Source: Ylistrum balloti (lineage: Eukaryota). From it: 64,000 nt of DNA. The DNA lies in assembly GCF_031769215.1 (NCBI RefSeq), contig NW_026781958.1:620001-684000 (forward strand), in the 5' to 3' direction. A program made the position numbers and the translations under genes. The notes under the pieces were generated by a model. That model was given only the letters and a program-made list of their open reading frames with translations. It was not told the DNA's origin and searched no databases. Positions 55,901-61,742 of the stretch are shown one piece after another; position 1 is the first letter of the stretch; each line of letters starts with the position of its first letter.

Positions 55901-58900
55901 CACTGAATGGTTGTTTAAACGGGATAGACTCAGTATTTTGTTCCTTGCTGAAATTTTTTTTATTCCAGAAAATTGGAGAGACTTGGGCTACAGATCTGTA
56001 TGAACTTGCCCAGCTTAAACAGTTCGTAGAGGAAGAGTCTTACCTGAACAAAATCATGAAGGTCAAACAGGTAGGCCAATTTAAGGTCATAACAGTCTGA
56101 AAAAAACAACTAATGTGTCATATTTTCCAAGATAAATATGTTTTAAAGAAGAGGTTGAAAAGCACTGTTATCTTTCCACTATTCTGTATTATCTTATCCT
56201 AGTTGATAAGTATATTTCAGAAGAATTGAATGGCATAGTCCTGCATTCTGATGCATTAACGGACAGAAACCTGATTATTCTGTTATCAGTTCAGTGGTAC
56301 AGATAACATGATGAATTATAGCAAAACAATACAAACTTGTTACTTGCAGGAGAATAAGATGAAGCTGGCAGAGTACATCCTTAAGGAATACAATGTGACA
56401 GTGAACCCAGCATCCATCTTTGACATCCAAGTGAAGCGTATCCATGAGTACAAACGCCAGCTGATGAACTGTTTACATATGATCCTGTTGTACAACCGAC
56501 TGAAGAGGGATCCCAACATGGCTTTCGTACCAAGGACAATAATGGTTGGAGGCAAGGTAATATTTACAATAGAGTGGATAAGGAGAGAAAAAAAAACTAA
56601 AGGCATTCATAGTGGTATACTTGCCATTCCTGCAATTTGCAAGGAGACTCTTTGTTGTCTTTGGTTTACATAACATTTACCTCCATCAAATTAAGGGGTG
56701 AGCATGATGTATATTTATAAGGTTTTTAACCCTTATATATACGAATTATTATTGTAATCCTGAAATTTCAGAGTCCTATCACTTTTGTTGAAAACCAAGT
56801 TGCTTCTTATCACTCACATTTACAATATATTGGATAAAAGCACAAGTGTCTAACAAGATACGTTTTTGTCAGGCTGCCCCGGGATACCACACTGCCAAGC
56901 TGATCATCAAGCTGATCAACTCAGTGGCTAAGGTGGTAAACAATGATCCAATTATTGGAGACCGACTCAAGATTATATACTTGGAGAATTACCGTGTGTC
57001 CTTGGCTGAGAAAATCATCCCCGCAGCTGACCTGAGCGAGCAGATCTCCACCGCTGGCACGGAAGCTTCAGGTACCGGAAACATGAAATTTATGTTGAAT
57101 GGCGCACTGACCATTGGCACACTGGATGGAGCCAATGTGGAGATGAGGGAGGAGATGGGGCCGGAAAACATTTTCATCTTTGGCATGGAGGTTGAGGAGG
57201 TGGAACAAACCAAGAGAGAGGGGTAAATGTGGCTTACATATTCACAGATTGATGTTAGAACAAACCAAGAGAGAGGGTAAATGTGGCTTACATATTCACA
57301 GACTTTTGATAGAACAAACCAAGAGAGAGGGTAAATGTGGCTTACATATTCACAGACTTTTGATAGAACAAACCAAGAGAGAGGGGTAAATGTGGCTTAC
57401 ATATTCACAGACTTTTGATAGAACAAACCAAGAGAGAGGGTAAATGTGGCTTACATATTCACAGATTGATGTTAGAACAAACCAAGAGAGAGGGGTAAAT
57501 GTGGCTTACATATTCACAGACTTTTGATAGAACAAACCAAGAGAGAGGGTAAATGTGGCTTACATATTCACAGACTTTTGATAGAACAAACCAAGAGAGA
57601 GGGTAAATGTGGCTTACATATTCACAGATTGATGTTAGAACAAACCAAGAGAGAAGGGTAAATGTGGCTTACATAATCACAGATTGATGTTAGAACAAAC
57701 CAAGAGAGAGGGGTAAATGTGGCTTACATATTCACAGATTTATGTTAGAACAAACCAAGAGAGAGGGGTAAATGTGGCTTACATATTCACAGATTGATGT
57801 TAGAACAAACCAAGAGAGAGGGGTAAATGTGGCTTACATATTCACAGATTGATGTTAGAACAAACCAAGAGAAAGGGTAAATGTGGCTTACATATTCACA
57901 GATTGATGTTAGAACAAACCAAGAGAGAGGGGTAAATGTGGCTTACATATTCACAGACTTTTGATAGAACAAACCAAGAGAGAGGGTAAATGTGGCTTAC
58001 ATATTCACAGACTTTTGATAGAACAAACCAAGAGAGAAGGGTAAATGTGGCTTACATAATCACAGATTGATGTTAGAACAAACCAAGAGAGAGGGTAAAT
58101 GTGGCTTACATATTCACAGACTTTTGATAGAACAAACCAAGAGAGAGGGTAAATGTGGCTTACATAATCACAGATTGATGTTAGAACAAACCAAGAGAGA
58201 GGGGTAAATGTGGCTTACATAATCACAGATTGATGTTAGAACAAACCAAGAGAGAGGGGTAAATGTGGCTTACATATTCACAGACTTTTGATAGAACAAA
58301 CCAAGAGAGAAGGGTAAATGTGGCTTACATATTCACAGATTGATGTTAGAACAAACCAAGAGAGAGGGGTAAATGTGGCTTACATATTCACAGATTTATG
58401 TTAGAACAAACCAAGAGAGAGGGCTAAATGTGGCTTACATATTCACAGACTTTTGATAGAACAAACCAAGAGAGATGGGTAAATGTGGCTTACATATTCA
58501 CAGATTTATGTTAGAACAAACCAAGAGAGAGGGGTAAATGTGGCTTACATATTCACAGATTTATGTTAGAACAAACTTTTGATAGAACAAACCAAGAGAG
58601 AGAGGGTAAATGTGGCTTACATATTCACAGATTTATGTTAGAAAAAACCAATACACAGGGGTAAATGTGGCTTACATATTCACAGATTGATGTTAGAACA
58701 AACCAAGAGAGAGGGGTAAATGTGGCTTACATATTCACAGATTTATGTTAGAACAAACCAAGAGAGAGGGTAAATGTGGCTTACATATTCACAGATTTAT
58801 GTTAGAACAAACCAAGAGAGAAGGGTAAATGTGGCTTACATATTCACAGATTTATGTTAGAACAAACCAAGAGAGAAGGGTAAATGTGGCTTACATATTC

Positions 58901-61742: not shown

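Follow-up and report, generated by a model that had tools for sequence, protein, structure and literature searches.

A tandem minisatellite built from the exon 13/intron 13 boundary of a scallop glycogen phosphorylase gene, with the dominant transcript spliced at the first donor

The window analyzed here, a stretch of 64,000 nt from the scallop Ylistrum balloti, carries on its + strand a glycogen phosphorylase gene of the animal type. Pfam family PF00343 matches the gene exon by exon from 48888 to 57229 and resumes beyond the window at 65397-65513, and tblastn of P0167, the public protein model 'glycogen phosphorylase, muscle form-like [Ylistrum balloti]' (857 aa), places 15 coding exons inside the window at 95-100% identity, save for two exons that aligned only partly. 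The phosphorylase exons were compared singly; full-length queries were either stored proteins or a single-frame paralog (L001:1114-3471). The assignment to the family rests on PF00343 together with orthology to annotated animal phosphorylases.

Exon 13 ends in GTG GAA CAA ACC AAG AGA GAG GG|gtaaat, splitting a Gly codon as GG|G, and its exon-specific sequence GAGGAGGTG sits upstream of 57203. The donor that follows, GTAAAT, is without a G at +5 and ranks with the weaker donors in the phosphorylase gene, where most are GTAAG. Intron 13 is 3814 nt long, and 3014 nt of it belong to a tandem array that begins within the exon (Table 1). An in-frame TAA directly follows the real donor, as was stated in the original prediction that drew attention to this locus, and any downstream donor would carry it into the mRNA. 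That prediction put the stop about two-thirds of the way along the exon numbering, but on the protein it falls at residue 727 of 857 (~85% of the length).

Table 1. Features of the exon 12 to exon 14 region, in window coordinates, with the donor contexts found among the core copies of the array
Feature	Position	Strand	Copies	Evidence or remark
Coding exon 12	56347..56556	+		PF00343; tblastn of P0167; spliced onto exon 13 in RNA contigs
Coding exon 13	56873..57222	+		PF00343 positions 492-612; tblastn of P0167, residues 610-727; RNA contig joint
Junction-derived ('mirage'-type) minisatellite, 54/55-nt units	57203..60216	+		Tandem Repeats Finder and core parse
Authentic 5' splice site GTAAAT	57223..57228	+		Used by the dominant mRNA (X6, X7 RNA contigs)
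In-frame TAA	57224..57226	+		Ends ORF 56846..57226; read only if the first donor is skipped
Intron 13 remainder, non-repetitive	60217..61036	+		Ends ...ttgttatcag
Coding exon 14	61037..61171	+		tblastn of P0167, residues 728-772, at 100%; RNA contig loose ends
Donor context GGG|GTAAAT			23	
Donor context AGG|GTAAAT			28	
Donor context TGG|GTAAAT			1	
Donor context AGT|GTAAAT			1	
Donor context GGGCTAAAT			2	GT lost
Truncated donor context			1	

The assembly also holds a second glycogen phosphorylase gene (G000:C258:890264-892624, equivalent to L001:1114-3474), the first 786 residues of which are encoded in one open frame; the final piece of the Pfam match follows ~4.5 kb downstream. Identity is 88% with a Mizuhopecten yessoensis protein and ~66-70% with the usual bivalve phosphorylases. 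The gene has the look of an old pectinid paralog almost free of introns, and is possibly a retrogene.

Tandem Repeats Finder reports the array of intron 13 as 57203-60063, with a period of 55, 51.7 copies and 85% matches, plus a segment at 60066-60216. In our own parse the core TAAATGTG[GA]CTTACATA occurs 56 times at a spacing of mostly 54/55 nt, in agreement with the ~55 tandem copies of the exon 13/intron 13 junction that had been read from the sequence at 57203-60216. Unit 1 (57203-57257) consists of the last 20 nt of exon 13, the donor GG|GTAAAT and ~34 intronic nt; GG|GTAAAT is retained in 52 of the 56 core copies, and the earlier statement that most copies are intact is therefore correct. 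The array copies are of equal donor strength in that they lack the +5 G. The units had been described as 55 nt long with four G or 54 nt long with three. These lengths stand, whereas a strict link to the number of G does not, there being ten 55-nt units with only three G through a G>A change (GAGAAGGG). The 54-nt units with three G are open in the reading frame of exon 13, as had been proposed and as the ORF list confirms.

The unit tail exists in three variants, TTGATGTTA, CTTTTGATA and TTTATGTTA, which form interspersed blocks; since TTGATGTTA is present in both the first and the last units, we take it to be the original form. Mean identity among the 48 full-length units is 93.8%, with variation limited to a few columns, and the regular spacing is broken by three small irregularities inside the array (72, 18 and 32 nt). 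The final two units are degenerate, as is usual for the edges of arrays. Intron 13 has a single AATAAA, at 59334-59339, which owes its existence to a partial internal duplication between units 39 and 40.

The array DNA matches this locus alone in the 648-Mb (648.5-Mb) assembly, and it is therefore not part of a dispersed satellite or transposon. A scan of 56800-61200 against Rfam returned no family, and the first four units, folded as RNA, do not surpass shuffled sequences (z = 0.36), so that structural masking of the pseudo-sites is unlikely. The locus thus holds a head-to-tail intronic array whose first monomer spans an exon-intron boundary, the arrangement by which boundary minisatellites are recognized.

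Assemblies often mis-size long tandem arrays, so that an assembler might falsely expand a single junction, and an assembly artefact had been named beforehand as a finding that would undo the prediction. This was examined in Logan contigs from two independent DNA runs (X1 and X5) of two studies. A 3.6-kb single-copy contig spans 56300-57250 at a depth of 17.5 in X1 and 12.2 in X5 and stops at the start of the repeat, while array unitigs stand at 300-1036; those that cross from one unit to the next have depths of 118-549 each, with sums of up to 1036. The junction k-mers are thereby present at ~25-85x the single-copy depth, equivalent to about 40-55 copies for X1 and as many as ~85 for X5, although depths summed over contigs gauge copy number only crudely. 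The presence of tens of copies in independent runs from two studies, together with units that vary in a structured way (three forms of the tail, partial duplications inside the array), makes an origin of the array in the assembly process extremely improbable. Compared with the window, the DNA contigs of X1 and X5 also have in common a 24-nt insertion at window position 56843, within intron 12, and six substitutions, indicating a second common haplotype that occurs under both organism labels.

The history of the array is evident from the orthologous loci of Pecten maximus (L017), Argopecten irradians (L018) and Mizuhopecten yessoensis (L023), which were reached via stored proteins. A tandem array at the exon 13 junction is absent from the orthologous intron of all three species, where the intron is short, at ~1.1 kb (P. 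maximus), ~0.5 kb (M. yessoensis) and ~0.4 kb (A. irradians). The last 20 exonic nt are identical in P. maximus and differ by 2 or 3 changes in M. yessoensis and A. irradians; exon 13 of these relatives is then followed by GTATGT or GTACAC, and the opening bases of their introns align weakly with the array unit. Alignment of the end of exon 13 across related species had been suggested as a check, and it finds the exon end conserved and the array missing from three scallops. Because the 20 exonic nt are conserved in relatives that have no array, the unit must have been copied from the resident junction and not the reverse; this, along with the single genomic locus, indicates that the unit derives from the junction itself and not from an inserted repeat. 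By comparison of these sequences, the expansion can be placed after the split of this lineage from Pecten, Mizuhopecten and Argopecten, and is lineage-specific.

The same alignment bears on the idea that concerted evolution of the array feeds changes back into the coding sequence, which had been put forward on the grounds that a Thr in this region departs from a usual Leu. The motif EQTK[R/K]EG is present in all four scallop proteins, and E-T-K-R/K-x-G in many other bivalves. Since the Thr is common to four scallops and many bivalves, it is ancestral; with the 20 nt being identical in P. maximus, which has no array, there is no sign of feedback into the exon, and that proposal is rejected.

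Which donor is used was determined from two runs (X6 and X7) that are labelled 'DNA?' and were taken as RNA solely on account of their spliced contigs and of zero depth in intron 12. The RNA evidence consists of assembled contigs from one sample, and such contigs drop rare variants. They were placed on 56300-57640, and joints to exon 14 were read from the loose ends of the contigs. Each run provides one spliced contig (4230 nt at a depth of 409 in X6, 5348 nt at a depth of 527 in X7), joining exon 12 to exon 13 at 56556|56873 with GT..AG ends (alignment joint 56554/56871, cut moved by +2). At 57225 the contigs leave the genome and continue into exon 14 sequence, CAACTCAAAACAG... / CAACTCAAAACAGTACTATGAAAGCAATCC. 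Since GTA is common to the start of the intron and the start of exon 14, the junction is 57222|61037, that is, the first donor; the P0167 protein model has the same exon 13/14 junction (...KREG|YNSK). The dominant transcript in the X6 and X7 contigs therefore uses the most upstream site. Unitigs of the array have depths of only 2-5 in these runs, less than 1% of the exon depth even though summed over ~50 copies. With exon depths of 409 and 527, such values indicate that the intron is removed efficiently and that there is no abundant isoform containing array units. No contig with a downstream donor is present among the assembled contigs of X6 and X7, from which rare variants would have dropped out.

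These data bear directly on the central proposal of the original prediction, in which the array works as a set of decoy donors: the ~52 pseudo-donors would bind U1 snRNP, some of them would give rise to TAA-bearing mRNAs targeted by NMD, and enzyme output would depend on copy number. Several features make this conceivable, including 52 intact GG|GTAAAT sites identical to the real donor, the TAA immediately behind that donor, and a real donor that without its +5 G is weaker than most in the gene, so that competition could occur. Copy estimates also seem to differ between individuals (~40-55 versus up to ~85, though these are crude), and in the human IFI6 and CBS minisatellites the two nearest pseudo-sites are used (PMC1557585). 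However, the dominant RNA contigs use the first donor alone, array k-mers remain below 1% of exon depth in RNA despite being common to tens of copies, and three related scallops run the phosphorylase gene without the array.

The closest precedents also argue against working decoys. In human F7, intron 7 holds a VNTR with a 37-bp unit in 5-9 copies that begins in exon 7 (Borensztajn et al. 2006, PMC1557585). In a panel of 50 constructs, the identical pseudo-sites proved functional but never competed, the most upstream site always being taken; the authors explain this by oriented 5'-to-3' scanning, with exon definition contributing (PMC1557585). In amphioxus, 'mirage' minisatellites in Adh3 and the globins BflGb6/9 leave splicing unchanged (PMC3087553). 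Taken together, we consider it unlikely that the scallop array works as a regulatory decoy, and we give an equally small chance to the more specific notion that minority transcripts made via downstream donors are destroyed by NMD and that array length thereby tunes phosphorylase output in a fast-swimming scallop.

A different possibility is that the array is raw material for new exons or introns, with units being included as micro-exons or seeding the gain of an intron. Each donor is preceded at 18-19 nt by a 3' splice-site-like TTAG or ATAG (...GATGTTAG|AACAAACCAAGAGAGAGG|GTAAAT), the 18-nt inclusion from a three-G unit would be in frame, and a model of intron gain has been proposed for the amphioxus mirages (PMC3087553). 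The unit tail also coincides with the final 11 nt of the orthologous intron in P. maximus. Against this, neither the RNA contigs nor the P0167 protein model contains such an inclusion, the 34 nt that separate neighboring sites leave too little room for an intron, and the tail resemblance was spotted post hoc and may be chance. A role of this kind is very doubtful, more so than that of regulatory decoys. As to the resemblance itself, the tail ATTGATGTTAG (57247-57258, and in each unit) corresponds to the end of the P. maximus intron (cattgatgttag|GTAC) at L017:30391-30402, and the tail variant CTTTTGATAG resembles the intron end of M. yessoensis (cttttgatattag|) in L023 near 30116; the likeness of the unit tails to the intron ends of relatives is probably due to chance.

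The best explanation of the locus, and in our view a highly probable one, is a lineage-specific intronic minisatellite of the exon-intron boundary, of the type of the amphioxus mirages and of F7 intron 7, in which the extra donors are silent and the enzyme is made normally. A 54/55-bp segment, made up of 20 nt from the end of exon 13, the donor and ~34 nt from the start of intron 13, was duplicated in tandem and expanded to ~55 copies, presumably by replication slippage or unequal exchange. The most upstream copy would remain the end of the exon and the working donor, while the other copies would leave with the intron. By analogy with F7, the pseudo-donors are most likely silent, and their silence probably comes about through the choice of the first donor after the exon. 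The array itself is most likely a tolerated by-product, near-neutral and not regulatory.

The scallop array resembles the F7 VNTR in that the first monomer crosses the exon-intron boundary and the authentic donor has identical 5' pseudo-sites behind it; of all these sites only the most upstream is used, as established by experiment for F7 and from contigs for the dominant transcript of the scallop. It differs in scale (~55 copies versus 5-9, and 20 exonic nt copied versus 4) and in its host, a bivalve, whereas the human case has been subjected to mutational and minigene tests. In addition, every downstream donor in the scallop would add a stop, whereas the fifth and sixth pseudo-sites of F7 would not. 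Further boundary minisatellites are found in IFI6 (6-16) intron 2, with 25 pseudo-sites, in CBS intron 13, in LMNB2 and in PDGF (PMC1557585), and these share with the scallop array a donor that is reiterated, 10-25 times in their case, in the following intron. While the two nearest pseudo-sites are used in IFI6 and CBS, no such use is seen in the scallop contigs, where rare use would escape. The scallop array is larger than the cases in PMC1557585 (5-25 copies) and its host is a conserved metabolic gene of a mollusc, but it is the same kind of object.

With the amphioxus mirages the array has in common splice signals within the units, undisturbed splicing, diverged edges and a homogenized interior. 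The mirages, however, are short, those of the globins having 3-6 units, and may lie on the acceptor side, whereas the scallop array is on the donor side and far larger. There is also a likeness to NMD-coupled decoy or poison sites, since the use of a pseudo-donor would on paper yield a premature stop. Unlike in such systems, there is no decoy-using transcript among the scallop contigs, related species do without the arrangement entirely, and neither a regulator nor any regulation is known.

No new mechanism is revealed by this locus, as minisatellites at exon-intron boundaries were already known from F7, IFI6, CBS, LMNB2, PDGF and the amphioxus mirages. It does show that around fifty perfect copies of its own donor, lying immediately behind the real one, can be tolerated by a metabolic gene without visible change to the main mRNA, and the ~52 identical pseudo-donors may constitute one of the largest natural reiterations of a 5' splice site in an essential metabolic gene. 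The rule of the most upstream donor is thereby extended from human F7, with its 5-9 copies, to a mollusc and a tenfold larger array, and the locus would offer a natural lophotrochozoan test of the scanning rule by which the first donor wins. It is moreover a dated case, the array being by sequence comparison younger than the split from Pecten, Mizuhopecten and Argopecten. For genome annotation, arrays of this sort yield spurious ORFs and can mislead gene predictors, and in population studies the array could serve as a hypervariable marker.

Several other tandem repeats are present in the window. The intron after exon 15 holds ~120 copies of a 20-nt unit (ATATCATCACTAGAAAAGTT) with 13-nt sub-units at 61814-64000, where the array runs off the end of the window; it begins 72 nt past the exon 15 donor and was not copied from the junction. 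An origin from a junction was looked for at the starts of the arrays at 307-978, 20926-23114 and 61814-64000, with no sign of one. A 34-nt tandem repeat at 50043-51156, in the intron that separates coding exons 3 and 4, recurs in the same intron of P. maximus at 70-80% identity (L017:19376-21063); judged by this correspondence, it is an old, conserved intronic array, unlike the young array at the exon 13 junction. Upstream of the phosphorylase gene lie well-preserved minisatellites with 27-39-nt units in 10-81 copies (307-978, 15480-16312, 20926-23114 and 33469-33864), some of them in or near the neighboring Ena/VASP gene.
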